From Takakia lepidozioides (Eukaryota > Plantae > Bryophyta), in contig CM060731.1 in NCBI GenBank assembly GCA_030704615.1, positions 60,760,001-60,824,000 of the forward strand: a stretch of DNA of 64,000 nucleotides, given 5' to 3'. Position numbers and translations under genes: made by a program. Positions 2,740 to 55,500 of the stretch are shown here, one piece after another (within the stretch, counting starts at the first letter, position 1; every line of letters starts with the position of its first letter). The notes under the pieces are model-generated. The model saw only the letters and a list, made by a program, of their open reading frames with translations, had not been told where the DNA came from and made no database searches.

Positions 2740-3900
2740 GCCAATGCTGCTGCAGCTTCCAGTTGACCATCTACCCATGCAGGCAGAATAATATTCATTC
2801 CACAGCTTTTTCACATCGTACCTGTAGTGAGAAAAAGCTACCTACACCTTGCAATTAATCTGGACCCACACTCTATCCCTGCTCTTCAGCTATCCATGCC
2901 TCTGCATAAATCAAGCATACATCCTTGCTTTGGTGCTAGCAGCTGACGATGACAGCCTAGATTTGTTCTAGGAAACACCCAACTCAACTTATTACACTAG
3001 TTCCTATGCTCGATTGCATCTGCTACTCTCTATAATCCAACAGGCATTCACCTTCTTGCCTCGATTGCCCCACCATTGACTGGGGTCAAAAAAGTATTCA
3101 CTCCACAGCTTGTCCTCGTCTTTGTTACCTGTTTTTGGATACTTTCATGTTGTCACATCGGTAGTATCATGTCAAAGTCACTCCAAACTAGATTCACTCA
3201 ACCAGCTAACTTGCAGAATTCAACATGGAAAGTTAGGGCCGATTCTGATAAGAGGGAAAAACAGGGTGAAATGTGCTGAAGAAGATGCCTTCATTAGCAG
3301 TGCCTAATTATATCAATTGTGCCGCTACTGCCAGTTGACCATCTACCCATGCAGGTTTCTGGTAGCTATTGATCCACATGGAATCTCAGGTAATGTGGAG
3401 CTTGAAATCTGCCCCTCTTAGATGAATCTGGACCCACACTCTATCCCTGCTCCTTCGGCTATCCATGTCGAAGAAGAAGGTACCCTCACCACATTGTCTT
3501 CGACCTAAGAACAAACTGACTCTCCCCAGAACGGCGAGCTCTCAGCTGACACCTTCTCACACACATATCCTAGCGTTTGTCGCTTGCCTCAGATGCGAAG
3601 GTTGCTCCAACTGCAGGCCTCCCATGTTTGCCCTCCCTCCCTCCCAGCTCTGCTCCGTGCTGCAAATTCAGGGCTGAGTCTGATGAGAGCGCAAAACAGG
3701 CTGAAATAGGTCGAAGAAGAAGGTGCCCTCGCCACATTGTCCTCGACCTAAGACCAAGCTGACTCTCCCCAAAACGGCGAGCTCTCAGCCAACACCTCCT
3801 CATACCCTAGCGTTTGTCGCTTGCTTCAGATGCAAAGGTTGCTCCAACTGCGGGCCTCCCATGTTTGCCCTCCCTCCCGCTCACTCTCTCTCCCTCCCCG
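2740..3900 (-). pseudogene. Decayed 5' region of an OSB-PDF/PPR family paralogue (two partial PDF motifs plus duplicated leader)
   Basis: The minus strand gives KYPKTGNKDEDKLWSEYFFDPSQWWGNRGKK|gtgaatg (~3050-3145) and IHLRGADFKLHIT*DSMWINSYQKPAWVDGQL (~3330-3428). The acceptor context (gagtgtgggtccag|att) matches the intact gene at 49642-49656. A ~240-bp leader segment is duplicated at ~3470 and ~3710. Confidence 0.7.
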
Positions 3901-11509: not shown

Positions 11510-12060
11510 ACAAGCATGCCCAAGTGGGTCACTTGGTTGCATGTTTGGAATCTAATAAACTGCAGGCTGGTCCATCAAGATGCTTGTGTATACATGTCTT
11601 GAATCTGTAATATTGTAGGCTGTTCTTACCTACCCAAGAGGCCTTGCATGATGCATGTCTTGGGATACTTACAAATGGTAAAGAGTGAAGCTGCAATATG
11701 TTTTGTCATGCCTAAGAAGTTTACTTGGTTGCATGCTTAAAATCTGATTAATTGCAGGCTGGTCCTTCAAGGTACTTGTATGAACATATCCTGAATCTGT
11801 AGTAGGATAGGTTGTTCTTACCTACCCAAGGAGCCTTGCATGATGCATGTCTTGGGGTACTTACAAATGGCAAAGAGTGAAGCTACAATATGTTTTGTCA
11901 TGCCCAAGAAGATTACTTGGTTGCATGTTTGAAATCTGGTAAATTGCAGGCTGGTCCTTCAAGGTGCTTGTATGAACATACCTTGAATCTGTAGCAGGGC
12001 AGGCTGTTCTTACCTACCCAAGGAGCCTTGCATGATGCATGTCTTGGGTTACTTACAAGA
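11510..12060. repeat. Tandem repeat, ~191-bp unit x ~3, inside the CACTA element
   Basis: acttggttgcatg...tgcaggctggtc...ttcttacctacccaag...gccttgcatgatgcatgtcttggg recurs at ~11531, ~11723 and ~11914. Confidence 0.85.
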
Positions 12061-13669
12061 ATTTGAACATGCTGTAGCAATCTGATTTTTCAGTACACAA
12101 GATGCTTGCTTATATGCTTGTCTTGTTGTCATGACCTGTACATAAACAAACCCCGCCCTCCCACCCTGTTTTATCATGAATGATTGGGTGAAATCAATTG
12201 GGAAGTCATGACAAGAATGGAAGTGTTAGATGGTGCCCTGTTTATGGGCTGTTTATGTCTTTAATTGACAATGACCCTAGTGGGCCTTGTCCATGTCTTG
12301 ACATGACATGAGTAACTTCTCTCTCTTTCTATTTCCAGTGTACTTGGTGGTTCTTGTACACACCATCTACCACTTTCCTTTCTGGTTATTTCTTCATCAT
12401 GTTGATATACTAACATGGTTTTTTTTCTGGACTAGCAGAAGGTCCCTCCGTGACAAAGATATGGAGCAAAGACCTTCATAAGGTATGTCCTCCAGCAAAA
12501 ACTTGTTGGTGATTTAAAGCACGGAGGTCTTTAAGGTAAGCATAATGCTTTTGGATGTTGTCTTCATATTGATATATTGAGCTAGGCCCAGGTAAAACCA
12601 CCTGCAGGAGTATGTGTATACCTTCTACATGATCCAGTCAATGCACACTACTCGTGTTAGATGGTATCCTGTAGCTGATGCTTTGTATCAGTTTTAGACA
12701 CTCTTAGGCTTATATGCTTTCATACCTCTCTACAAGTGGCTTTGCTCTATGTAGCACCACTAAGCAAATATACATATGTAATATGCTATGTGCTTATCAT
12801 ACCTTTGGAAAAACTGGCCTTAAAACCAGGATGGTGTATAGATGGGCAGCAGGTTGCTACCATCCTGCGTTACACTTGTTTGGAGTGGGTTTGTACAGTG
12901 TTCTCTTATCCCTCTTTGCTGATCCATGACATCCATTTATTGATCCTTAAACATGGAAAGGCGAGGAAGTAGGCATTTCCAGCCCCTATGGCAAAACTAT
13001 CCAGGGGTTGGAATCTACTTTGAAGTGGGAGAAACCTTATGAAGGGGTCTGGTATGCACTCCCATACGGGGTGAGTGCATACCACACTCACTCCATAAGG
13101 GACTGCCATACCAGGGGCTGGTTGGTGGGATCCCTCTCTCTCCCTCTCTCTCCCTCCCTCATTGGAATGGGTTTTATCAGTGTTAATTTCCCGTTTTTCC
13201 ATCTATACCGGATGGACTCTAACAGTTTTTTCACCCGCCCTATAACAATTTTTTTATCCATACCAGATGAATTACCTGGGTGGACACTAAACTGAGTCTA
13301 TGATTTTTTCCCTCATCTCTCCCTCTGTCCCATAAAGATGTGGAGAGAGAGGGAGAGAGGGAGAAAGAGGGAGTGAGGAGGGAAAAAAAAAACTAAAAAA
13401 GAAGGTGGGGGGGGGAGTGACTGAGCAGCACGAGCATCTGAGCAGCAGCTGCTTAGTCACTCCCCCCACCCCCCACCTTCTTTTTTATTTATTTTCCCTC
13501 ATCTCTCCCTCTGTCCCATCATGATGTGGAGAGAGAGGGTGTGTTGAGGGAAAAAAAATTAAAAATGAAGGTGGGGAGGGGGGGTGACTGAGCAACTCCA
13601 TGAAATTGAAACTGAAGAACATTTCTTCTATTGTCCTATATACTATGAGATCCGTGGGGATTCCATTGT

Positions 13670-23714: not shown

Positions 23715-25230
23715 TGGCCACTAGGGTAGGATTCAAAATGACACACCGTACAATTCCAGCTTTGCTGATGTCACCATGGACCTTTGTGCTCATTTATAGG
23801 GCTGCCACACTGACACACGCAGTTATCAGGCTCGACCCTGCACATTTTAGGCTATTCCAATTGGTTGTCCACCAGGGCAATGTTCAAAATGTCATCTAGT
23901 ACAAATCCAGCTTTTGACGATCTCACCATGGACCACTTTGCCCATTTCTAGGGCTGCCAAGCTCGTACACACGTTGCTGGCCCCTAAGACAATGTCTAGA
24001 ATGACAAATAGTACAATTTCAGCTTTGAACATGTCACTGTGGACCGCTTTGCCTATTTTCAGGGCTGCCAAGCCTGCACACGCATTGTTGGCCACTAGGG
24101 TATGGTTCAGAATGACATACCGTACAATTCCAGCTTTGACGATGTCACCATGGACCTTTGCGCTCGTTTCTAGGGCTGCCGCACTCCCACAAGCATTGGC
24201 CCTCTGCGCTCCTTTCCAGGGTTGCCACACTTGCCACACTCGCATACATATTGGTTGTCCATTAGGGAAGCGTTTAGACTGTCATCTGGTACAATTTCAG
24301 CTTTGACAATGTCACTATGGACCACTTTGCCCATTTCTAGGGCTGCCAGGCTCGCATACACATTGCTGGCCCCTAAGACAATAGTCAGAATGACAAATAG
24401 TACAATTTCAGTTTTGAACATGTCACCGTGGACCGCTTTGCCTATTTTCAGGGCTGCCAAGCCTGTGCACGCATTGTTGGCCACTAGGGTAGGGGTCAGA
24501 ATGACATACCTTACAATTCCAGCTTTGACGATGTCACCATGAACCTTTTGCGCTCGTTTCCAGGGCTGCCGCACTCCCACAAGCATTGGCTATCCACCAG
24601 GGCAGTGTTCAGAATGTCATTTGGTATAATTCCAACTTTGACGATGTCACCATGGACCTCTGCGCTCGTTTACAGGGTTGCCGCACTCTCACAAGCATTG
24701 GCTGTCCACCAAGGTAGTGTTCAAAAATCATCTAGTATAAATCCAGCTTTGATGATGTCACCATGGACCACTTTGCCCATTTCTAGGGCTGCCAGGCTCG
24801 CACACGCATTGCTAAGACAATGTTCAGAATGACAAATAGTACAATTTCAGCTTTGAACATGTTACTGTGGACCGCTTTGCCTATTTTCAGGGCTGCCAAG
24901 CCTGCACACGCATTGTTGGCCACTAGGGTAGGGTTCAAAATGACATACCTTACAATTCGAGCTTTGACGATGTCACCATGGACCGTTGTGCTCATTTCCA
25001 GGGCTACCACACTCCCACAAGCATTGGCTATCCACCAGGGCAACGTTCAAAATGTCATTTGGTATAATTCCAGCTTTGACGATGTCACAATGGACCTCTG
25101 CGCTCTTTTCCAGGGTTGCCACACTCGCATACGTATTGGTTGTCCACTAGGGCAGTGTTCAGACTATCATCTAGCACAATTCCAGCTTTGACAATGTCAC
25201 CATGCACCACTTTGCCCATTTCCAGGGCTG
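23715..25230 (-). repeat. Tandem array (~13 units, ~111 bp) derived from PLS-PPR L/S motifs; pseudogenic
   Basis: Units translate NACAGLAALKIGKAVHGDIVKAGIVxxVILNxTLVAN. Anchors (tacaatt/tataa) at ~23749, 23899, 24011, 24122, 24289, 24400, 24511, 24624, 24736, 24839, 24950, 25062 and 25176. Frameshifts occur between some units. Confidence 0.85.
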
Positions 25231-25289
25231 ATGACAATTTTTAACAAAGCTTTGCTTGTTAATATCATGTTACTGCTGCTCTCTATAAT

Positions 25290-26649: not shown

Positions 26650-27620
26650 TCATAGCAAATTCAGGGTCGAGTGTAATGAGAGGGCAAAACAGGCTGAAAT
26701 ATGTTGAACAAGAAGGTGCCCTCACCACATTGTCCTCGACCTTGTGTCATGACCCATGGAGGATTTGACCGACCATCAACCCAAAGAACCTCTTGTGTGT
26801 GTTGTTTGTGTCTCCCGAGAGCCCACATTTACAGGATAGACAAACTTCTTGACATCGTACATTAAGCCAAATGCCACACCTTGCGATTGCGGTTGTCCCA
26901 CATCGTAAAGGATCTTTAAAAAACTCATACCAGCTCCGCACCGTGTTGCAACTTCAGGGCTGAGTCTGATGAGAGCACAAGACAGGCTGAAATAGGTCGA
27001 AGAAGAAGGTGCCCTCACCACATTGTCCTCGACCTTATGTCCTGACCCATGGAGGATTCGACTGACCATGAACCCAAGATGACCTCTTGTGTGTGCTGCT
27101 TGTGTCTGTAGTCAGGTAATGTCGGATTGGTCCGTGAGAACCACCACAGTGCAACTGAGTGGGTAGAGATTGAAACGCGACCTGCTAAGACAAAGTTGAC
27201 TCTCCCAAGAACCTTGTAAACATCAGGAAGAATACCAAATCATGGTACTAACAGGAGCCGAGAGCCCACATTTGTAGGATGGACAAACTTCACATCGTAC
27301 ATTAAGAAAAAACCACACCTTCCGATTGCGGTTGTCCCACCATCGTGAAAGTCAAAAACTCATGCCTGCTCTGCTTTGTGCTGCAAATGTAGGGCCAAGT
27401 CTGATGAGAGGGCAAAACAAGCTGAAATATGTCGAAGAAGAAGGTGCCCTCACCACATTGTCCTCGACCTTGTGTCTTGACCAATGAAGGATTCGACTGA
27501 CCATGAACCCAAGATGACCTCTTGTGTTTGCTGTTTGTATCTATAGTCAGGTAATGTCGGATAGGTCTGTGAGAGCGGCCACGGTGCATTCGAGCAGGTA
27601 GAGATTGAAATACGGCCTTA
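26650..27620 (-). repeat. Three tandem copies of the leader (putative transit-peptide) region of the OSB-PDF/PPR family
   Basis: gaagaaggtgccctcaccacattgtcctcgacc...gacccatggaggatt recurs at ~26710, ~27000 and ~27440. The same sequence precedes the WWDN exons at ~43010 and ~47760. Confidence 0.75.
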
Positions 27621-28289
27621 TCGCGATGCTTTGACACTAGGAATACACAGATCCCAAAAAACACTAAGTCCCAACCCTGCACTCTGCGACCTAGCAACCC
27701 TAAATTCGAGCCAACCTTTTGAATTTTTTGAACGTTTTGCACCCTAACAATATATAAAATGATTATATATTCCATGTTATTATGTGAAGGTATTTTTAGC
27801 TTTATATATTTGTGTATATATATATATATATATATATTCACCTCGAAGTCATATTGTTGCAGCCGTTAGATGCACTTGCATCCAACACACCACAATATTT
27901 CAACCATGCAAGCAATAATATGTAGACACGTCGTCATTTGCAATCACATCCTCGTTCTATTGCATCCATTTATCTTTGTATTTTCCACATAGACACTTCT
28001 TAGGCAACCAGCAATCGCCACGTGCAGTCGTGAATACTGGCAGTCATACATTCCCACGCCCACGTCATCCTGTTGCAGTTTTGGCCATGACTCCTAGTCG
28101 TATTTACCATCTTTCCCTATCTGGTCAAATGTGTTTGACCGCAAATCCTGACGTGGCGGAGGTACAAGGTGGCATATACAACTTCTGGTGGTCACAATTG
28201 GCAACCAGGATTGCCCCCTTGCATTTTGTAGACATATGTGCTACGACTGGGCAAATGTGGCAGACGTTAAAGCCGGGATCTGTTGTAGT

Positions 28290-41432: not shown

Positions 41433-42784
41433 GACCTTTCCTTTGAGGTCAAAAGCTGAAGCTCTTCCAGGCACTGATAAAGTAACTCAATGTCTTACTG
41501 AAGTCTTCCACTATGAGGATCAGAAATGTTTGGCAGCTTACCTGCGCACTGCCTTGACCCTTAGACAATCCCTTGAGCAGTAGTTGCTTTTGGGGTGTTT
41601 TTTTTTGGCTCTGATTTTGCTTTTCTTTGCGTGACTTTTTGAATTGAGACAATACACAAATCTCTTAGTGTTAAGAATACACCTTTTGATCTCAGTCCAG
41701 ACAAGAAAGTGGTCAGAAGTACCAACACTTTGGCAACTGGGGAAACAACTCCTTATCCACTATGATATATTCCACAATGGACTGTTCCCCAGTTTGGACT
41801 TTTTTACAAGTCCCCTGCAAAGGGACCTCTTTTGACCTTTCCTTTGAGGTCAAAAGCTGAAGCTCTTCCAGGCACTGATAAAGTCTCCAAGGAAGTTAAG
41901 CTCGATTGTGCTAAGTTCCTTGCCAAAGGCCTGTGGTCTTGTTAGGAGCCTTTAAAGCCGGGTGAGCAAGGCCAACAACAGGACACCGTCATTGGGCCTT
42001 CTGGCGAGGATGAGCAGCAAACAACACTAAGGGTTCCCTCTGAGGCATGTTGACACATCCCACAAAGAGTTCCTTAGCCCTCATGCCGCCCTTCAGTTTC
42101 AGTCTCAGCCAAATACCGTGAAGTTCCTTGTTGATGATTTCAGAATTATGACACAGGAAATCAAGGCCAAAGACTATGCTTTGCAGAAGCTGTCTTGCCC
42201 AGCATAAATGTGGGTGCCAATTAGCTTGAAGAACTTGTCCCACTTCACATTGTTTCCTCTTAAGATGCCCAGCCGCAAGCCAGATGGAAGGACACAGTTG
42301 GAAAAACTGTTCCTATGATTCAAGACAGCCTCCATAAAGTTAAGCACTTACTTGGCAGTAAAATAACGAGCCTCAAAGCTAGACATACGACAGAGGGTGG
42401 CTGGCAGGCAAAAAACAACACCAAAAAGCAAGAGTTAACGCAAAGAGTTAAGTATGGATTTACAGGTTGTTGCAAGGCAGATCATCCAGGTGTCAAATAG
42501 TGTACAATTAGTAACTGACCACCTTTAAGTTACTTCTTCCCGAAAATGAAAATTGGAAGAGGTCCTTTGTGTCTTGCAAGCTCCGCGAGCAACTGGACTT
42601 ATCTCCGAATCGCCCCCCAGAAGTCCAAACCAACATACCCCTCCTGAATTCAGTTCTAGCAATGTTTCATATCCCACCATTGATTGAATGAAGGCAGGAA
42701 AGTTTCCTGACCTGGACATTCGCATTGAGAAGATGACAATGTTCTGAAAATGAACTCCACGCTTCTTCCGCAGTTCGATGACGA

Positions 42785-43500
42785 CAAGCATTGACCATTT
42801 CGTCTCCATTGTCCCACCATTGACTGGGGTCGGGAAAGTGTTCATTCCACCAGTGTTCAGTCTCTGTTATCTGTTTTTGGATACTTTCCTGCTGCCACAT
42901 CGGCAGTAACTTGTCAAAGTCACTCCAAACCACCACAGATCCACCCAACAAGCTATGCATCTCAAGGCCGAGTCTGATGAGAGGGCAAAACAGGCAAAAA
43001 TAGGTGGAAGAAGAAGGTGCCCTCACCACAGTGTCTTTGACCTTGTGTCATGACCCATGGAGGATTTGACCGACCATCAACCCAAAAAGGCCTCTTGTGT
43101 GTGCTGCTTGAGTTTGTAGTCAGGTAATGTCGGATTGGTCTGTGAGAACCACCACGGCCCAGCTGAGCAAGCAGAGATTGAAACACCAAGACCAAGCCGA
43201 CTCTCCCAAGAACCTTGTAAACATCAGGAAGAAAGAAGGTTCCAGCTGAGCAGGCAGCATCCAAAAGGATCGACCGGTGTATGAAACCCCTCGGCGTTCA
43301 GGGACGCAGGGACATCGTCGTCCCTGCAGTTACTTTTGGGCAGTCGGGGCAGATATAAAACTTTGACGACGACAATGACATGGCTACGATGACGTGTCTA
43401 CGAAACGTGGCGACGATGACGTGTTGACGATGACATGGCGATGATGACGAGGCACTAAGGCATCCAATTCCTGTTCTGTACGCTAAACTACCTTCCAACC
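42785..43500 (-). pseudogene. Decayed OSB-PDF/PPR paralogue 5' region and upstream motif block
   Basis: Family leader (RGGSHRPIRHYLTT..VMTQGQ..CGEGTFFF), then WNEHFPDPSQWWDNG. The upstream gacgatgacgtg repeat block is shared with 48190-48450. Confidence 0.7.
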
Positions 43501-44720: not shown

Positions 44721-45100
44721 TCACCAGTAATCACCACAAGAACGAATCCCATCTTCAAAGTGGTGAGCAGTTAGCGTCCCGTACAACAATTGCTCGGCCA
44801 ACAATCTTTGAGATAAATTTAGTGGAGATGTGGCAGTCACCACACACTGAAAGATTCTTGATGAGACGGAGACTCGGCGTCCTAGGAGTCGTGCTGATCA
44901 GCCCAAAGCCAATGCCAGCTTCTCACTATGGTGGCAAAGAGAAAATTCCTTTTCCTCCTCCCCCACATCACGCAATACAAAGCACGTGTCAGGCACATAC
45001 CCCGCCTCCTTCATCTGCCCAGACAATCTTCTCAGCTCAGCATGGATTTCGTTAATTCTGGGATGCAACTTGTCATATACAACGAAGGTGTGCACCCTCA
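44721..45100 (-). pseudogene. DYW deaminase domain remnant
   Basis: VHTFVVYDKLHP..EIHAELRRLSGQMKEAGYVPD...[23 protein letters not shown] and HHFEDG..SCGDYW*, with frameshifts. Closely similar to the intact gene at 52200-52589. Confidence 0.92.
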
Positions 45101-45439
45101 GAAATTCTGAACAGGCTTGATGATGGGGATATTTCAAATTGCACCAACAATTGATTCACAGGCATATGGCCTCAATCTTGGCAGATGTTGCTTCGAACTC
45201 TAGACGACAAACTACCTTGAATGTCCACCAAGCTTAACCGTAGACATTCTATTATCGAAACTTAAACAGTCCAGTATTAGGCATCTCTACCTTATAGACT
45301 CCTTCAACATTTGCATGTAGTGGCTTCATAGCTTGTGAATAGTAACTTGTGTTCCCCCAAAAACTTCACTTTATCCTTTGATTAGAAAGCCCATCTTCTC
45401 TTCCTTGGGATATATTATCTACGGGGAAAGGGAGCTCGC

Positions 45440-46507
45440 CTGCTCGAACTCTTGATGGCTTGAGCTTCATCTAGTACCATATACTGCCCACTTCACACGC
45501 CAGAAATACTTCTCATCAACACCAACAGCTGATAGCTGGTGATTAACACATGGAATCCTGCCTCCCTGCAACCACAAAATCTCCTTCATCACCTACCCGC
45601 GCCATACTCCATCTGTCCGGCAACATGATGAACTAGTAATAGCTCATGCAGATTGAAAAACAGGTGAAACCAACTACTGAACCCAGCCTTCCACAGTGGT
45701 ACTGGCCCCATTCCGCTCTCGATTTTTCCGCCCCGTCCCTATAGTTCATCCAAATTGGTCTCATGGTCTATGGCTGCAAGCTTACGCAAGCACAGCCTGA
45801 TGAGCACATTGTACCCGGTGACTACTTAAGATCAAAACCAAATCAAAAGGGTGCATGGATAATTTTTTAATAACTAAGAGTGTGGTGACCTGAATGAATT
45901 TGATACAACCTGACGCTCCCGACTGACAACAATTAACACTGCAGAATGTGGGTACCCAGGTAGAGGGATGTTGACCATGCCTTCGATAGGGACGCTTCGG
46001 ATTGATGTTTTTCCAAAGTACTGTTCCTTCATTGAGTCCCCCCAATAAGGTAGGATTTTCAGGTCAGGGCAGAACCGCCGAACTTCTCTGCCCCATTGTT
46101 CAAGACAGAAGCTGGTGCCACTACAAGGAATATCTGTTTCTCCTGTACTCCATCAGCAGACAACTTTTGTTCAGTGTTCATCATGGTTGGCATGTATATG
46201 CAAAGACTCAATTCAATCCACCTAAACTTCAAAGGAAACCATGCAAAAGCACACTTTCAGCCATTAAAGTCCTCCCTTGTCCAAGAATCATTTTCACAGG
46301 ATGCATACACCATAGAACTATACTACCACAAGGAAAATAAATTCAAGCTCTAGAGTTAACAAAGTTTATGGGAAAAACAGTAAGGCATATTAATTTTAAA
46401 AAAACACTGTTAGTGTCGATTTACCTCAGCCAGATGAGCAAGGAAGGCCATGGCCTGAATGGTCTTTCCAAGACCCATCTCATCCACCAGTATACCATTC
46501 AATCCCT
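45440..46507 (-). pseudogene. INO80: INO80 chromatin-remodelling ATPase fragment, three exons with introns retained
   Basis: [27 protein letters not shown]|gt (~46425-46507); FLVVAPASVLNN..FCPDLKILPYWGGLNEGTVLWKNINPKRPYR (~45980-46145); REAGFHVLITSYQLLV..EKYF.RVK.QYMVLDEAQAIKSSS (~45440-45568). Frameshifted. Confidence 0.88.
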
Positions 46508-47095
46508 ACTCCCCAAATTCCCAGGAAAAACAAGTCAGACTGTCATTCACAGACTGCTGTACAAATCCTACCATTTAACTGTAGCATGGTAGGATCAACA
46601 TGGTGAATTAATGGCGTAGTCATTGCACCAAAGCTGTGATAATCACCCACCGACCTAGTCCTTACAAGTCCAAACCAACTTACAAAGCCATGGATATAGC
46701 TGTTGATTTATTCTAATTAACAGTTGATTTTGCTGCAGACAGACCCTCTCGCCTGGGTTGAGTATCCTTGTAGAGTGTAGAACAAATTGTAATATTTTGA
46801 AGCAACACTGTTCAATAAGTGCTCAAAAGCTGAAGCCCAACAGGCAAGTCTACTTGAGAAGATGTCATACTCTAAAATGTAGCCAACTTATGAAGGGTTG
46901 CCCCCTACTGTCCAGGCGAGCAGTCAACCAAACATTAACCTGGTCAACATCTGGCAATAAGGGTTGGCCGTGCTACCAACAAAACCCTAGGAACTCCAAG
47001 ATGCAATTCCCCTCACCCATACCTGCTCTTTATCCCACTTCTTCCAGAAAATAACCATATGCCGGGCCAGCCTTGGGGTGCGCATTGGTGCACCC

Positions 47096-48100
47096 TTAAT
47101 TATTTTCAGGGACCGCATTTTCCGATTTTAACCTGCAGGGATGAGCTGCCATATTGTTGAACACTCCGTCCACATCCGCAATGCTCCCACATTTGGCATA
47201 CATGTCCACGAGGGTATTGTTCAGAATCACGTCTGGTACAATTCCAGCTTTGGCAATGCAACCATGCACCTCTTTGCCCTTTTCCAGGGCTGCCAGGCTT
47301 GCACACGCACTGCAAACGCACAGAAAGTGGTCGGGCTTCACCCCTTGGTCTCCAAAGCCTCCATCCCGCTGTGCATACCCTGCAAGCATCGCGTTCCACG
47401 ACACCACATCTCGTTCAGCCATAGTGTTGAGAACTCCCTTCGCATCCTGAATGTACCCACATTTGGCAGTAGTTCCAATTCTGAATTGCATCTGCTTCTC
47501 TCTGTAGTCCAACAGGCATTCACCTTTTTGTCTCCATTGTCCCACCATTGACTGGGGTTGGAAAAGTGTTCATTCCAAAGCTTCTCCTCATCTCTGCTAT
47601 CTGTTTTTGGATACTTTCCTGCTGCCACATCGGCAGTAACTTGTCAAAGTCACTCCAAACCACCACAGATCCACCCAACGAGCTAACTTACATAATTCAA
47701 TATGCAACTTCAGGGCCGAGTCTGATGAGAGGGAAAAACAGGCTGAAATAGGTCGAAGAAGAAGGTGCTCTCACCACATTGTCCTCGACCTTGTGTCATG
47801 ACGTAGGGAGGATTTGACCGACCATGAACTCAAAAGGACCTATTGTGTGTGCTGCTTGTGTCTGTATTCAGGTAATGTCGGATTGGTCTGCAAGAACCAC
47901 CACGGTGCAGCTGAGCAGGCAGAGATTGAAACACGGCATTCTAAGACCAAGCTGACTCTCCCAAGAACCTTGTACACATCAGGAAGAATACCAAATCATG
48001 GTACTAACAGGAGCCGAGAGCCCACATTTGCGGGATGGACAAACTTCTTCACATCACATCGTACATTAAGCAAAAGCCACACCTTGCGAGCTCCTGCAAC
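47096..48100 (-). pseudogene. Decayed OSB-PDF/PPR paralogue (leader + WWDN exon + PLS motifs), head-to-head with the intact gene
   Basis: KYPKTDSRDEEKLWNEHFSNPSQWWDNGDKK|gtgaatg is followed by AKCGYIQDAKGVLNTMAERDVVSWNAMLAGYAQ..ACASLAALEKGKEVH..NTLVDMYAKCGS. Contains stops and deletions. Confidence 0.85.
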
Positions 48101-48723
48101 GCCTCCGCGCTCAAGCACGCGGGGACATCGTCGTCCCTTCCCCGCGCTGCAAGACACCGATTAGTTTCGGGCATCTCAGGCAGATTTCAAGAACTTTGAC
48201 GACGATGACGTGGTGATGATGTGGCGACAATGACGAGGCACTATGGCACCCTATACCTGCTCTACGCTAAACTAGCTTCCGCTGCAAGACACCGGTTAGT
48301 TTCGGGCATCTAGGGCAGACTCCAAATTTTTTACCACGATGACGTGGCGACAATGACGTGGTGACGATGACATTGCGATGATGACGTGGATACGATGACG
48401 AGGCACTATGGCACCCTATACCTGCTTTACGTTAAACTAGGTTCCGACCTCCGGTCGTCGCTAGAAGAAAAGAAGGTTAACAGATATGATATTGAGGGAA
48501 TAGTTATGGACGGTAGACGGTACCCTTGCCCACAGCCCAGCTACAAGCGAGAGATGGGGGCTCTGTGTCTCTCACTTGTTCAGGATCTGTCATCGATGCG
48601 AGTCTGTGTCTGGTGATGGGCTTTCGATTTGATGCCATGCGGTACGAGCAGTGCGAAATGGGTTGTTGGAGAATGTCGCTGTGAAGAGTGGTGGCAGAAG
48701 GGAGAGTTGGAGAGGGAGCAGCC

Positions 48724-51700
48724 ATGGCAGCACAGAAGGTACGCATGGGACCAGTGGGGAACATTCCTGTCTTCTCCACATATTGTCGATGCATCTTGGG
48801 GTGCTGTCGCAATCGTCCCCGAGATCACGCTGCCTGCAAGCCTGGCCCTCAGTTCAAAGCTTCAAAAAGGTGTGGACAGTCCACTCTGTGCGCTCCTCTG
48901 TATTTTCCCAACTGCAGTGCAGTGAATTCTATTTCAAACAGTTGCAAGCCAAGTGCGGGGCATTGGAGACCAGGAGAGGAGGACGAGGTTTATGGAGAGT
49001 GGGGCGACAGAGGAGGCGGCCACCTGGTTGTGGCGAAAACTAAATGGCGACGGTCAGCCACGGTCACATTCAGCAAGGACGTTGCAGACACAGGCAGATA
49101 TTCAGAATGCCATGAGGACAAGCTTTGGAACGAATGTTTTTTAAACCCCAGCCAGTGGTGGGACAATCGAGACAACAAGGTGAATGCGGGTTACGGTTCC
49201 TCACAAATTAATGATAGTGTCCCCCTCTGTTTTTAGCGGGCCCTTTTCTCCTCGATCCTGCGATTGGCAGGGGAACCGCGTCAGAGTCGTCACATCGCTC
49301 GAAGTCTAGTACTGGATCGACCTCATGCTTTCTAGTATGAGGGCAATGCCCCTACAGCAATCTAATCTTGGGCGACTGAAATTTACATTTGTCACATCTC
49401 TTGCAAGTGAGAGGGCTAGAGCAGCATTGGCGGAACAAACCTCATGTCTTCTGGTATGAGGTCGATTGCATCGCATCACTCAACGCTCAATTGCTTGGTG
49501 TGCATGAAGTGAGCAGAAACTTGGGTTGGCAGGGTACATAGGAAATTATACAAAGGGGAGTTTTGCGTGTAGTACCTTTCTGTGCAAGGGGCAGGATTTA
49601 CTCCTTTCATTGAGGAGGCAGGGATAGCTGAAGGAGGGAAGGAGTGTGGGTGCAGATTGATCCCACCGGACCAGATTTCAGGTGCAAGAGTACCAAGAAG
49701 GCATTATGGAATGCTCACTGGCTAGATCGTCAATTTCAAAAGCTGGAAGCAGCTAGGCAAAAGTCTATGGTGAGCTGTGGTGAAGGGGGATTGATGGTCG
49801 CATCCAGTATGGCAGTCCCTCCACTTTTGCTGATGTAGACCTCACAGACTCATGATCTTCCTGTGTAAGTTGCATAGTGTGTTCTTCGAGGTACCCTTAT
49901 TGGTATTTTCATGAGGGAAACATTTGTGCCATTGACTGCCTAACCCAAAGGAGCATGTTTTTGATTGAGAGAGAGAGTTGCTTCTCTCCTTGAGAGGTGC
50001 TGAACACAGTTGTCAGAAGGGTTACTTGATATAAGATGATAGTCATGGTATTGCAGCTGGTACAGCATATTTGTTCTTGCAAGCATGAACCTCCATAGTG
50101 TGATATGGATACGTATTTAACCAAAACCCAAGAAACCCTGTTGTGTGTAGCAAAGAGCCTGTTTTATTGAAGATCTCTTTTTTGGAAGTATGTAGGAGCT
50201 TTGCTATATATTTATGTGGCTTGTCAGTGTAACTGAGGGTATTGAGTCGTGCAGGATGGCAGGGTTGAATGAGGTACAGTGGTCGGAATCAGGATCAGCT
50301 CCCACCATGACCACTGCTTTTGAGAGAGGACCAAAAGGAGGAGGAAATAAGAACTCCTTGGGCACTTGTAGGGAACTGAGGACACTCTCATGTAAACCAG
50401 GACAGCTCAAAGAGGTATGGGAAATTTTGAACCAAGGAGGCATTTCGGCAGACTTAAATACTTATGTTTCTCTCTTGCAGGAGTGCATTAAAATTAAGGA
50501 TCTAGAACTGGGAAAGCAGGTTCATTCCCACATTATCCAAAGTGGATTCAAGCCAAACGTCTTTCTACTCAACACCCTTGTCAACATGTATACCAAGTGT
50601 GGAAGCATGGCAGATGCACGCCAAGTGTTTGACAAAATGCCTGAACGGAATTTGTTTACGTGGAATATAATGATGGCAGGATATACCAAGCATGGGTATG
50701 GTAGGAAGGCCATCAAAGTCTACGATCAAATGATACAGGAAGGGGTGACACCCAACAGGGTCACATTCATTTCTATTCTCAAGGCATGTGCTAGCATAGG
50801 GGCCCTAGAAAAGGGCAAGGAGGTCCAAGCTGACATCATCAAAGCTGGAGTTGCACCAGATATTGTCCTGGAGACGGCCCTTACTGCCATGTATGCCAAA
50901 TGCGGGAACATGAAGGATGCGCGTCATTTGTTTGACAATATGGCGCAACGAAATGTGGTTTCATGGAGTGCGATGATTGCAGGATATGCTCAGCATGGGT
51001 GTGGTAGGGAGGCTTTTGAGATCTATGAGCAAATGATACGTGAAGGGGTGATGCCCGACAGAGTTGCATTCATTTGTGCCCTCAATGCGTGTGCCAACCT
51101 GGGAGCCCTGGAAAAGGGCATAGAGGTCCATAGTGACATAATCAAAACTGGAATTGCACCAGAAGTCGTTCTAGAGACTGCCCTTGTCGCCATGTATGCT
51201 AAATGTGGGGACATAGAGGATGCACGACAAGTGTTCGACTGTATGGCTGAACGAAATGTGGTGTCATGGAATGCAATGATAGCAGGGTATGCCCAGCATG
51301 GGTGTGATAGGGAGGCCCTGCAATTATTCCGGAAAATGCGACAAGAAGGCTTGACGCCGGACGTGGTGTCATGGAATGCCATGATTGCAGGGCATGCTCA
51401 GCATGGTTGTGGTGGGGAGGCTTTGGTGATGTATGAGCAAATGCTACGTGAAGGGGTGATGCCTGACAAGGTGACATTTATTTGCGTTCTCAAGGCATGT
51501 GCTAGCTTGGCAGCCCTGGAAAAGGGCAAAGAAGTCCATTCTGCCATAATCAATTCTGGAATTGCATCATATATAAATTTGGAGAATACCCTCATCAACA
51601 TGTATGCCAAATGTGGGAACATTACAGATGCACGCCAAGTGTTCGACAGTATGGCAGAACGAACTGTAGTCTCATGGAGTGTGATGATTGCAGGATATGC

Positions 51701-52589
51701 TCAGCATGGGTGTGGTATGGAGGCCCTGCAACTATTTGAACAGATGCAACAGGAAGGTTTGAAGCCAAGTGCCATCACCTTCATATGTGTTCTCTCTGCA
51801 TGTCGCCATGTGGGCCTTGTGAATGAGGGTCGCCGCTACTTTGATTCCATGAGTCGAGATCATAACGTCACTCCTACAGTGGAGCATTTTGGCTGCATGG
51901 TGGACATTCTTGGCCGTGCAGGGCGATTGGATGAGGCAGAGGACTTCGTCAACAAGATGCCAATTGAACCAGGTCCTACGGTGTGGGGAGCCTTGCTTGG
52001 TGCCTGCAGAATTCATGGCAATGTCGAGGTGGCAGAACGTGTCACAAAATGCCTTCTCAAGTGGGATCCACAGCATGCAGCAACTTATGTGGTCCTATCA
52101 AACGTCTACGCCGCTGCTGGCAGGTGGAACGAAGCAGCGAAGGTGAGAAAAATGATGCAGGACAGAGGTGTCAAAAAGGAGCCAGGATGCTGCCTCATTG
52201 AGGTGGAGAACCAGGTGCATACATTCCTTGTAGAAGACAAATTGCATCCAGAAATTGACGAAATCCATGCTGAGCTGAAGAGACTGTTTGGGCAGATGAA
52301 GGAGACAGGGTACGTTCCTGACACTCGTTTTGTATTGCATGATGTTGGGGAGGAGGAAAAAGAATTTTCTCTTTGCCTCCACAGTGAGAAACTGGCAATT
52401 GCATTTGGGTTGATCAGCACACCCCCAGGCCTGCTCATCCGCATCATCAAGAACCTTCGCGTGTGTGGTGACTGCCACACCGCCACCAAGTTCATCTCAA
52501 AGATTGTTGGCCGAGTAGTTGTTGTACGGGATGCCAGCCGCTTTCACCACTTCCAAGACGGGGTTTGTTCTTGTGGGGATTACTGGTGA
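48724..52589 (+). CDS. PLS-class PPR-E-DYW RNA-editing factor with predicted N-terminal transit peptide and OSB-type PDF motif (~976 aa; exons 48724-49179, 49656-49769, 49839-49864, 50255-52589)
   Basis: The intact ORF 50214..52589 has ~15 PLS motifs, an E domain, PG box, HSEKLA, CGDCH and a CSCGDYW end. Three upstream GT-AG exons join in frame (phases 0, 0, 2) to give LWNECFLNPSQWWDNRDNK/IDPTGPDFRCKSTKKALW. The PPR-DYW part is near certain; the 5' splicing and start codon are inferred. Confidence 0.85.
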
Positions 52590-55500
52590 AACCAGCATCA
52601 TGCGTGAAAGCGAGTGACTTCAAACGAGGAGAAAAACTGTCATGATATTTGGAAAAAAAAGAGTAAGTCTCAGAAACAATGTCATTGAATGAGACAGTCA
52701 GTACAGAGCTCTCTTGAGATCTGCCATGATTACATTTCAGGTTTTTTCACACAACAGCAGAAAGGCACAGATTTTCCTACTTCAGAGGAGTATCATACTC
52801 ATTAGGAAAAGTGGGCATGAAGAAAGCTTTGATGTTTATGGAAGTGTTAAATAATGTTCCCAAAAATGGTTGAACGAGGGGACCCCAAAAGATCAGGCAG
52901 ACTGGATAGCTGATGATGGGTGGGGAATCTCCAGTATTTTGATACATTTTGATACTTAATCCTTCTGACAGCATCAGTTGTTGCTCTCTGCCCAGGAGTT
53001 GCTTCACTCTGCCTCCTCCTTGGCCAATTCCCTCAAAGTACTGTTTTCAGTCCCACATCTCTTTTTTCTCTCATCACAAGTTAGCAGAGCATGATGTATT
53101 ACAAATCATGCAGGGATAGAGCCGCAAAATTGCAAATGGTGTTGCTCGTGCCTTTAGAAGAGCTAGTGCATTGAGCATATTCCACGAAAATGCTGATGTA
53201 TCTACTCTTGGATACTTGGGCCATGGAAACCATATGTTGGTCTGGAATCAAGAAATATAAGGTGGTGTGAGGGGGAGCATATGTTGGTCACAGTGAATCA
53301 CCATAGTGATCACAAGGTTCAAGAAACTTTCTTGCTGATTTCATGCCTAGTGTGTGCGCAGCTATTGAATTCATGCTAGCTGGCTCTAGCATGGGTGGAG
53401 ATGACCTCTGATGGGCATGGTGTGGTTATTGACAGGGATATGGGAAGATGTGGGAGCTGCTCATGGCTCACCTCCAACACATTTTTTTCCAGAGGTTGGC
53501 TCACTAGACCTGTTTGTGATCGTGCTGAGGGGAGATTGTGAATGCTGCAGTTTTGTGCACAGACCACAACCAGTTTCTAACAAATGGAAGAGTTTGCAGG
53601 GAGAAGTCAAGGAGTACATACGACATAGCGAGTGTGATTACATAAGCACATAAGCGGGCAGGTTGAGGAGTACATGATACTCTATGGCTACATAAGCTCA
53701 TTAAACACTCAGGACTTGGACACAATCTTTCACAAGGTACGATATCACTTTGTATGTGGATATAGTACTTTATTGCAGTGTGGTGAATTTACCTTGAAAA
53801 TCATTCTTAATTCGGCTTTCGACTGTAAGATACGGGAGAAGATGTGGGAGGGTAAATTCCTGTCATGTAAAGGGGCATTGGTACATGGACAGGAAGGAGA
53901 GGGGGAGGTAACCGACATACTCATTGAATTGCCTGGCAAGTTTTCTTGTATTCATCAAACTCTTGGGCTCTCCTGTCCCCCAACTACATGCAGATGGCAT
54001 TGATGCTCACCCCTCTGTAAATGGCATGGTCTGATAGCAGGAAGATATTGTGCTCTTCTTCCCACAATTGTTGAGGCATAGATGATCTTGAATTTTAGAA
54101 AAAAGTGAAATCAAGTTGTCCAGAAGTTGCAACCTCTGTGTATGTGTGTGAGATGTCTTTTGCCTTGGGCCCTATTCATTGCCAGTTGCAAAATAGATGT
54201 CCCTGGAAATCTTTTCCACGTCTGATGGTGGGAATTGTTCTGCTGCAGCCATTGACATTTTTAGATGTGAGAGCAAAGTTTGACTCGGAGTCGAGGGAGA
54301 TCACAGATGACATCCAAAGGAAGAAAGACAGTACCAATTTCCTTGACAACGGCTTGTTGGGTTTGTGTCTGGAAGGGGGCTACAAGTTCAAACCCAAGAA
54401 AGATGGTGGATTTCCCTTTCACTCACTCAGCCTGGTAACTCATTTTACCCACTTTTGCAAGTTATGCAGGTGTCCATGAGAACCCAGTATGGCATGTGGG
54501 ATTCTTACCCTCCCAAAGCTGGTTGCATGGTGCAGGTTGAGTGGGAGAGAAAGAAAGGTAGACACAAGGGAGTGTGAAAGGGAGGTGGCTTTAAAGCAAG
54601 ATTGTGTATGGTTGTAATTCATGTTGTTGTTGTATGTAATTATGCTGCTCTTTTCTCTTTTACACCTTCACTTTGATCTACCTTCTTTCTGCAAGCACCT
54701 CAAAAGTTGCCCTTGAGACTTCCTTCGCTCCAACGCCCTTGGCATTTGGTGTGCAAGGTGTAGAGCTGTTTTTGGTTCTATATTATTTCGAATACATGAG
54801 GTCCGTACTTCTTTGATGGATGCTTTCACCTCTGGTCCTGCGATTTGGGAACGGATCCATAAGGAGGTTGAGAAGTGTAGCCTTGATGGACAGGATGATC
54901 AGTGGATGACTTGCCAGCTTCTCTGGCAAATGTCTCCCCTGTGGTTTGGCCTCCAGGTGGTTCTTGGGCCCCCCTTTGTTTGATCTCTTTTGTCTCAGTA
55001 AAGGCATTCCTCTTCAAAAAAGGAAAAAAATGCCCCTTGGTCCCCCTTGACATGAGAGGTGGATTAGCCTGAATTAGGCAAGCAGGGAAGCCAACGGAGG
55101 TAGTGGAGATGTTCAACTAAAAGTTGACTGCAATGTCATGCAGGGAGCTGGGCAGGGGTCCTCAGGGAGTTCTGTACACTCCCAGCAGCCAGATTTTGTG
55201 AGCTGAGGGGTGGGACAGATCTCCAGATTTGCAGCTTTCAGAACCAGTTTTCCTCTCCCCTTTATTATTATTTATAACCTGTCAGAAGTTTTTTTTTTGG
55301 TTTTGTTTGTTTTTTAAGTATTTCAAAATCGTAAAAGCTTGTGATTTCGTAAGAGCTTCGATATATATGTACTATAATAACAGGTTTTTTTTATGGTTGC
55401 ATTGATGGGTAATCTACTGGGTGCTGCTTGTTGGGACCCTTTATAAATTTGGTTGACATACTGATGTAAAAAATTATAAAGTATATATAAATTATAAAAT

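Follow-up and report, generated by a model that had tools for sequence, protein, structure and literature searches.

A locus on the forward strand of a Takakia lepidozioides contig was found to join, on one RNA, exons for an OSB-type PDF motif and an exon for a predicted PPR-E-DYW editing factor. We consider it rather probable that the locus belongs, as a transcribed member, to a PDF-PPR-E-DYW family of seedless land plants, in which the fused protein is made when a 69-nt intron is removed. Only with that removal is the fused ORF continuous here, and the fused protein is a candidate only. All coordinates refer to the window, i.e., the whole 64,000-nt stretch of DNA that was analysed.

Gene model and transcript evidence

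The gene model starts at ATG 48724, with an upstream in-frame stop at 48682, and consists of the following features:

48724..49179, forward strand: exon 1, 456 nt, ending in phase 0 at donor aag/GTGAAT (from translation)
49180..49655, forward strand: intron 1, 476 nt, phase 0, GT..AG (joint in the X1 contig)
49656..49769, forward strand: exon 2, after acceptor gtgcag, with the second half of the PDF motif and a short linker (in the contig)
49770..49838, forward strand: candidate intron 2, 69 nt (retained in the sole transcript contig)
49839..49864, forward strand: 26-nt piece, ending in phase 2 (from sequence, in the contig)
49865..50254, forward strand: intron 3, 390 nt, GTAAGT..TGCAG (joint 49864/50255 in the X1 contig)
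50255..52589, forward strand: last exon, with a PLS-class PPR array, E, E+ and DYW, all intact (from Pfam and motif coordinates)

The exons, their GT-AG borders and their phases were read from the sequence just as the original prediction had described them. The final two codon bases of the 26-nt piece are completed by the G at 50255, and the frame runs from this piece through ATG 50256 into a 777-codon PPR-E-DYW ORF ending at 52589. As had been stated, this is an ordinary-looking PPR-DYW ORF, fully open up to its DYW terminus. With intron 2 spliced out, the 26-nt piece would be a micro-exon; with intron 2 kept, it forms the 3' terminus of an exon 2 of 209 nt. Joining donor 49769 straight to acceptor 50254 was rejected, as a stop follows after 5 codons.

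Transcript evidence was provided by a 769-nt contig of public run X1, the type of which is a guess ('RNA?'). The contig aligned, with 5 mismatches, to 48819-49177, 49654-49864 and 50255-50453. Introns 1 and 3, both GT..AG, were fixed to the base by this contig, the joint of intron 1 being placed there at 49177/49654 and shiftable by 2 nt. Since the contig shows introns 1 and 3, a single RNA carries both the PDF exons and the PPR-DYW exon, and the transcripts of this gene do not always omit the WWDNR/PDF exons. Among the predicted junctions, 49179/49656 and 49864/50255 were recovered, whereas 49769/49839 was not seen in the X1 contig, where contig-level data could miss a minor isoform. Thus, the predicted splicing of upstream exons onto the PPR-DYW exon was confirmed for introns 1 and 3 and left unconfirmed for intron 2 and its 26-nt micro-exon.

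In the case of candidate intron 2, the contig was unbroken over 49654-49864 and so retained the 69 nt, the last three bases of which spell TAG in frame (49836-49838). A length of 69 nt is divisible by 3; hence, exon 49656-49864 stays in the frame of the PPR ORF save for this one TAG. The observed RNA encodes 213 residues, comprising a presequence-like N-terminus and the PDF motif, and ATG 50256 of the intact PPR-DYW ORF lies in the same frame, 27 nt past the TAG. As the sole contig retains the 69 nt and with them a premature stop, the continuous fused ORF is unsupported in the form originally proposed. The depth of the retained-form contig was 10.7, similar to the 7-8 of unique contigs on the gene body; therefore, the form that keeps the 69 nt counts at least among the major ones in the X1 sample.

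The split PDF motif and its relation to OSB proteins

It had been proposed that the first intron splits an OSB-type PDF motif, and the two halves were indeed located at 49114-49179, at the end of exon 1 (ending ...WWDNRDNK), and at 49656-49736, at the start of exon 2 (..PDFRCKST..ALW..W..). From 82 PDF motifs of OSB/SSB-domain proteins, including named OSBs, an HMM was built and run on 3041 six-frame segments of the window. Among these segments, the end of exon 1 came first, scoring 32.6 bits over model positions 4-28, and the start of exon 2 came eighth, scoring 16.3 bits over model positions 26-46. The hhalign probabilities were 98.3% and 91.3% for the exon 1 and exon 2 halves, respectively, with abutting columns across intron 1. 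Exons 1 and 2 were searched separately, and whole-motif work used homologous database proteins. Pfam, which is without a PDF model, gave no meaningful match on exons 1 and 2. The motif is diverged: of the 14 PDF positions that are invariant in alignment A1, 13 were kept, the second Pro being lost, and there is a 5-residue deletion before the last Trp and a Cys for the usual His after PDF. Judged by its profile matches, which lie far beyond chance, the motif split by intron 1 is genuinely of the OSB PDF type, as originally predicted.

The PDF motif alone was modelled by AF2 with a pLDDT of 92.5. A two-PDF plus PPR model had confident modules, linkers below 50 and a pTM of 0.51. No solved fold relative was found by a PDB sequence search with the PDF profile (0 matches), by Foldseek against the PDB (nothing under E=5) or by a wide VIA search (Z of 2.3 or less).

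The relation to OSB proteins is also seen in gene structure. At a Marchantia OSB locus, an exon ends at 3230 and the next starts at 3377, and this phase-0 intron follows ...WWDNRxxK, at the same position and in the same phase as intron 1 here. The split motif is homologous to that of OSB, and the agreement extends to the common phase-0 intron position. The closest non-PPR relative of the query motif was a liverwort OSB with an SSB domain (6e-20), which is homologous to the named OSB1/2/4 with E values of ~1e-49 to 1e-40. OSB proteins and this gene have in common the ~50-residue PDF motif and an organelle-type N-terminus. However, PDF is C-terminal to the OB fold in OSB and N-terminal to the PPR-DYW array in this gene, the loop before the last Trp is shortened here compared with OSB, and Pfam gave no PF00436 SSB-like OB-fold match in exons 1 and 2. 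By predicted domain content, the gene has a PDF module in common with OSB and is not itself an OSB.

To our knowledge, descriptions of the PDF motif are limited to OSB recombination-surveillance proteins, where it is the part that binds ssDNA. Reviews report this role for the motif of OSB1 (PMC6963530, PMC4166229). Since OSB1 and OSB2 were reported to favour ssDNA over RNA (PMC4166229), an RNA-binding role for PDF is not established.

The PPR-DYW body and related fusions

Pfam matches on the last exon were PPR (4.3e-90, 11 stretches) and PPR_2 (1.9e-93), corresponding to tandem PLS-type repeats, followed by E_motif (3.8e-20), Eplus_motif (3.2e-05, exactly at the 24-bit cut-off) and DYW_deaminase (1.3e-43, with the full model covered). 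The deaminase signatures noted in the original prediction were kept, with the following motif coordinates:

52182-52190, forward strand: PG box
52308-52586, forward strand: DYW domain
52380-52388, forward strand: HSE
52464-52478, forward strand: CxDCH (CGDCH)
from 52578, forward strand: terminal DYW, then the stop

The product of this exon is a predicted organellar C-to-U RNA-editing factor of the PLS-class PPR-E-DYW type. The same PLS, E, E+ and DYW with PG box, HSE, CxDCH and a terminal DYW are found in PPR-E-DYW factors such as Physcomitrium PPR56/PPR65 and the Arabidopsis DYW-type factors. Unlike PPR56/PPR65-type factors, this gene has extra upstream exons with a PDF module. PPR-DYW factors are considered self-contained, consisting of a targeting peptide, RNA-reading repeats and a deaminase, and we know of no characterised PPR-E-DYW factor with more than a targeting peptide ahead of the repeats. 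Moreover, most PPR genes are intronless, unlike this one with at least two confirmed introns.

The first 80 residues of exon 1 contain 11 R/K and 1 D/E, a presequence-like composition that suggests organelle targeting by the exon 1 N-terminus. Among the first 50 residues of the peptide from ATG 50256, 4 are acidic, starting from position 6. Therefore, targeting seems to need the upstream exons.

Similar fusions are annotated elsewhere. PPR proteins with 1-3 N-terminal PDF motifs were found in Diphasiastrum, Sphagnum and Adiantum, and the Diphasiastrum complanatum 'hypothetical proteins' (O6H91_*), the Sphagnum proteins and Adiantum capillus-veneris KAI5061374.1 have the same PDF-PPR(-E/DYW) architecture as the Takakia locus. 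One continuous PDF-PPR-E-DYW protein (P0063) carries the PDF motif at 1-54 and a DYW match of 6.4e-40. The PDF motif occurred in 18 of the best 120 PPR matches, all from Diphasiastrum. The best 150 of 1311 PDF-profile matches were mostly multi-motif OSBs, 66 of them with an OB fold and 6 with PPR. The best PPR matches were 52-57% identical and came from a lycophyte, and identity to lycophyte, gymnosperm and moss PPR-DYW proteins was 50-57%. Because identity is only ~52-57%, the database PDF-PPR proteins are regarded as paralogues or distant orthologues. In Diphasiastrum, the isoform breakpoints of one PDF-PPR gene lie at the same intron position and phase as here, the position being taken from the breakpoints and not from gene structure. 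The annotated frames of the database proteins are continuous, whereas continuity at the Takakia locus rests on the candidate 69-nt intron. As annotated, the PDF-PPR(-DYW) architecture is thus real: a lycophyte, a moss and a fern have it in continuous predicted proteins. A literature search found no paper describing PDF-PPR proteins, in agreement with the earlier statement that no characterised protein with this architecture is known; uncharacterised database proteins with the architecture do exist.

A candidate fused editor and competing explanations

In the explanation that we favour, the upstream exons would equip a PPR-E-DYW editor with at least one OSB-type PDF module and an N-terminus resembling an organelle presequence. 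Removal of 49770-49838 would yield the fused protein, of about 976 residues. Retention of this segment, the form seen, would stop translation at TAG 49836 and give a 213-residue presequence and PDF protein, and intron retention would set the amount of full-length editor. PDF would fold independently as a small unit and sit, on a flexible linker, at the N-terminal end of the PPR tract, the end expected to bind the RNA target on its 5' side. In this position, it would most likely supply sequence-independent single-strand binding, either to RNA upstream of the PPR footprint or to nucleoid ssDNA. The site would be set by the PPR tract, and the C would be deaminated by the C-terminal DYW domain.

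The strongest competitor, possible although on balance unlikely, is that the locus is a recently disabled copy. Exon 2 would then always have been 209 nt (49656-49864), and a nonsense mutation would have made TAG 49836, leaving a transcribed pseudogene or a truncated presequence and PDF peptide only, with the PPR-DYW ORF untranslated. The contig fits this explanation in that it retains the segment and carries the TAG, and, apart from the TAG, the 209-nt exon keeps the frame of the PPR ORF. Furthermore, the gene is surrounded by broken PDF-PPR copies; because these other copies in the window are plainly broken, decay is common in the PDF-PPR family. Four of the five differences between contig and window were non-synonymous, in what is a tiny sample. 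However, the 777-codon ORF is fully open with all catalytic signatures, and the TAG stands exactly at an acceptor-like TGTAG (tgatgtag), behind a 68% pyrimidine tract and with a frame-keeping G/GTGAGC donor (atg/GTGAGC) 69 nt upstream. In a chance test on the TAGs within the window, such a context was found at only 5 of 1438 (0.35%), which argues for an intron and against a nonsense mutation.

It is improbable that the locus makes two separate products. In that case, re-initiation or an internal promoter would allow the PPR-DYW protein to start at ATG 50256, and the PDF exons would serve only as a 5' leader or long upstream ORF, or would encode a small PDF protein of their own. Such an arrangement would agree with the short distance from the TAG to ATG 50256 in the observed RNA and with the isoforms of the Diphasiastrum gene, which include forms without the PDF region. 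However, the peptide from ATG 50256 is without presequence-like composition, contig depth within intron 3 is very low, and the homologues are continuous fusions. In addition, ribosomes re-initiate inefficiently once an ORF of 213 codons has been translated. A motif match due to chance or composition, or 5' exons captured by a transposon and merely co-transcribed, might be suspected from the PDF half-motif fragments scattered as minus-strand repeats in the window, but this is very improbable given that the two halves match in the correct order on either side of a confirmed intron, that the intron position is common to an OSB gene, and that the exons of this locus lie outside the repeat families found.

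Beyond the family membership favoured above, a bolder proposal is doubtful at present: that PDF-PPR-DYW proteins are a distinct, undescribed editor class of seedless land plants, in which PDF either anchors the editor on nascent RNA or nucleoid ssDNA, so that editing is co-transcriptional, or replaces the trans helpers of seed plants, and that at this locus retention of the 69 nt switches between free PDF and full editor. Action of the fused protein on ssDNA or R-loops, or its participation in co-transcriptional editing, is speculation. An equally speculative analogy can be drawn with the MORF/RIP proteins of seed plants, which aid PLS-PPR editing factors as accessories; MORF/RIP act in trans, while PDF would act in cis, and the two are likened by role, not by sequence or fold.

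The more modest value of this locus lies in transcript-level proof that PDF and PPR-DYW exons are linked and in an intron position linking the PDF module to OSB genes, together with the caution that the fused frame here is still a candidate. PDF, being compact, also lends itself to trials on designer PPR editors. The combination of PDF with PPR-DYW, widespread and intron-conserved in lycophytes, mosses, ferns and Takakia, implies a putative accessory function of editing factors in nucleic-acid binding. Such a function would bear on how heavily editing lineages without the seed-plant helpers may gain affinity, or couple editing to transcription or nucleoids.

Gene structure and spliced RNA

The upstream exons of the original prediction were re-read from the sequence, and their coordinates were found to be exact. 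An in-frame stop at 48682 precedes the ATG at 48724, and the upstream elements were located as follows.

Upstream elements of the PDF-PPR-DYW gene
48724-49179, + strand: exon 1, 152 codons, ending ...SQWWDNRDNK and followed by gtgaat
49656, + strand: start of exon 2, preceded by gtgcag and beginning IDPTGPDFRCKST..ALW
directly after 49769, + strand: candidate donor GTGAGC, read from sequence
ending at 49838, + strand: candidate acceptor TGTAG, read from sequence
49839-49864, + strand: 26-nt piece ending in phase 2, its codon completed by G 50255

An ORF scan gave an intact ORF of 777 codons that opens with ATG 50256 and closes with the stop codon 52587-52589. It matched the Pfam models PPR (11 stretches, 4.3e-90), E_motif (3.8e-20), Eplus_motif (3.2e-05) and, over the full domain length, DYW_deaminase (1.3e-43). 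The deaminase signatures expected of it were found: it keeps the PG box, HSE, CGDCH and a DYW at its C-terminus. The PPR array at 50571-51803 contains recently duplicated PLS triplets, direct repeats spaced 303 nt and 408 nt with 67-81% nucleotide identity, which draw very many cross-mapping paralogue contigs at depths in the thousands.

Public data for parts of the window come from only two runs; each is stored in contig form, and the kind of each is a guess. When run X1 was aligned to 48600-52700, a 769-nt contig (depth 10.7, 5 mismatches) was placed at 48819-49177, 49654-49864 and 50255-50453. Both skips are GT..AG and match intron 1 (49180-49655, after a 2-nt shift) and intron 3 (49865-50254). 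With 476 and 390 bases missing between canonical splice borders, the record represents spliced RNA, and thus the PPR-DYW exon shares one transcript with the PDF exons. The predicted junctions 49179/49656 (with the 2-nt shift) and 49864/50255 were supported accordingly, and transcription starting only downstream of ~49900, named in the original prediction as the contrary outcome, is contradicted by a contig that begins at 48819.

The predicted junction 49769/49839 did not hold in this RNA. The contig is unbroken from 49654 to 49864, so that the 69-nt candidate intron 2 (49770-49838) is retained and the micro-exon is not seen as a separate unit. Because 69 is divisible by three, the resulting exon of 209 nt shares the reading frame of the PPR ORF and is interrupted only by a TAG at 49836-49838, the triplet with which the candidate intron ends. 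The RNA seen in X1 encodes 152 + 61 = 213 residues, and its stop lies 27 nt upstream of ATG 50256. Since the depth of this contig is about equal to that of unique contigs over the gene body (7.4-8.3), the intron-retaining RNA was at least one major form in the X1 sample; a minor spliced form is compatible with the contigs.

Identity and distribution of the PDF motif

Pfam holds no model of the PDF motif, and the OSB proteins were reached stepwise. A search with the motif-bearing N-terminal part of a PPR protein from Diphasiastrum matched a Calypogeia protein, P0121 (2.5e-21), in which an SSB domain is present. P0121 as query returned OSB1, OSB2 and OSB4 of many angiosperms (~1e-49 to 1e-40), each of them with PF00436. 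An HMM of 82 PDF motifs from these OSB proteins was then used to score the six-frame translation of the whole window, divided into 3041 stop-to-stop segments. The end of exon 1 ranked first (32.6 bits, model positions 4-28) and the start of exon 2 eighth (16.3 bits, positions 26-46). Compared singly, profile to profile, with A1, an alignment of 32 PDF-motif sequences, the exon 1 piece matched at 98.3% (columns 4-25) and the exon 2 piece at 91.3% (columns 27-58). The assignment of the split motif to the OSB-type PDF was borne out by both halves, which adjoin exactly over the confirmed intron 1. The motif retains 13 of the 14 invariant columns and is a diverged copy, since it lacks the second conserved Pro and has a loop shortened by five residues ahead of the last Trp.

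The Marchantia polymorpha OSB gene L001 has a phase-0 GT..AG intron (exon end 3230, next exon start 3377) that cuts the motif after ...WWDNRFNK, the same place at which the present gene is cut after ...WWDNRDNK. In one Diphasiastrum PDF-PPR gene, isoforms diverge or start at this intron point in both motifs. The common phase-0 site indicates, as judged from gene structure, that the PDF module of PPR genes is homologous to the OSB module, and it fits a gain of the two exons together rather than convergent evolution. The Diphasiastrum gene O6H91_01G119900 / 12G041000 (P0303, P0360-P0369) has 11 annotated isoforms, which differ mostly in the 5' region; one difference is a 7-residue alternative extension at precisely the site where an intron splits the first PDF motif, and some isoforms begin after the PDF motifs or omit early PPR repeats. 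It seems that alternative processing of the 5' region is usual for the PDF-PPR family.

Among the best 120 PPR-DYW relatives, an N-terminal PDF motif was found in 18, some with two copies. All 18 are annotated Diphasiastrum complanatum proteins, and the motif was absent from all Ginkgo and Cryptomeria matches in this set. In the database protein P0063, PDF residues 1-54 are followed by PPR, E, E+ and DYW (6.4e-40). The motif also continues into PPR repeats in Sphagnum gene models, and it occurs twice with PPR in an Adiantum protein and three times with PPR-E in a Logan protein of 1371 residues. A PDF profile search of 1.84 billion proteins gave 1311 cluster representatives at E<=0.001. Most of the best 150 were OSBs with several motifs; an OB fold was present in 66 of the 150 and PPR in 6. 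Reviews describe the motif as confined to green plants. The P0222 cluster of the dinoflagellate Effrenium voratum (460-847 residues, ~nine PDF matches, E 1.8e-100) has neither OB fold nor PPR. The angiosperm gene models P0221 (1160 aa, from Kingdonia uniflora), P0254 (Coptis, annotated as kinesin) and P0250 (Striga, annotated as ICR2) either contain as many as 13 PDF matches or link the motif to unrelated domains, which may reflect true expansion or the merging of separate gene models.

The retained 69-nt segment and the product

The candidate intron 2 has a donor G/GTGAGC, 68% pyrimidine in the 25 nt before the AG, and an acceptor TGTAG. When all TAGs of the window were examined for such a pyrimidine tract with a frame-keeping G/GTRAG donor 60-210 nt upstream, 5 of 1438 (0.35%) had this context. 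A random nonsense mutation in such a splice-like setting is unlikely, and owing to this rarity a real but inefficiently spliced intron is favoured. We lean, if only slightly, towards a fused PDF-PPR-DYW product being made at the locus. The composition of exon 1, presequence-like at its N-terminus (11 R/K vs 1 D/E in the first 80 residues), and that of the peptide from ATG 50256, in which residue 6 is acidic and the first 50 residues include four acidic ones, were counted in favour of the fusion.

That the locus is a recently disabled copy is possible but doubtful: broken relatives are common around the gene, yet the TAG stands in the rare splice-like context. Separate PDF and PPR-DYW products are improbable, because a protein started at ATG 50256 would probably, from its composition, be without organelle targeting.

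A broken PDF-PPR-DYW paralogue (44721-47643, - strand) lies head-to-head with the gene. Dispersed repeats at ~3.0-3.4, 26.7-27.7, 42.7-43.3 and 47.7-48.0 kb contain PDF-motif halves and adjacent PPR pieces and may be transposon-borne or decayed tandem copies; the exons of the present gene lie outside these families.

Broken paralogue and dispersed repeats
47643-47524, - strand: paralogue PDF first-half exon
47479-47147, - strand: paralogue PPR pieces, within ~45 nt of that exon
45137-44721, - strand: paralogue DYW after a 2-kb gap, frameshifted and split between frames
2995-3385, 26664-27681, 42670-43297, 47703-48002, - strand: dispersed PDF-exon repeats, 71-89% identity

The window also holds a tandem array at 11515-12090 (three 192-nt units, 80-85% identity) and a block at 23913-25273 with repeats spaced 111-335 nt, overlapping weak PPR-like matches at 23904-25137.

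Putative role of the PDF module

The AF2 model of the PDF motif alone (pLDDT 92.5) has three short strands with a helix at either end, and PDB sequence and structure searches found no solved structure resembling it. In a model of two PDF motifs and five PPR repeats from Diphasiastrum, the modules were confident and the linkers had pLDDT <50 (pTM 0.51), which suggests beads on a flexible string. On RNA, a PPR tract is oriented with its N-terminal repeats towards the 5' end and places the DYW domain at the C to be edited. Given this orientation, a PDF module at the N-terminus would have access to nucleic acid on the 5' flank of the PPR footprint. The PDF has been reported as the ssDNA-binding part of OSB1, and OSB1 and OSB2 to favour ssDNA over RNA (PMC6963530, PMC4166229). 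For the PDF module, the most likely putative role is that of an accessory that grips single-stranded nucleic acid irrespective of sequence; its target may be RNA, nucleoid ssDNA or R-loops.

A full-text literature search of incomplete coverage found no description of PDF-PPR proteins, in keeping with the original view that no functionally characterised protein of PDF-PPR-DYW architecture is known. A 2026 OSB family survey, for which an OB fold and a PDF motif were both required, makes no mention of PPR, and a 2026 kingdom-wide editing-factor survey refers neither to PDF nor to OSB. The new findings at this locus are two introns confirmed to the base, a stop-containing 69-nt segment retained in RNA, and an intron position common to an OSB gene.
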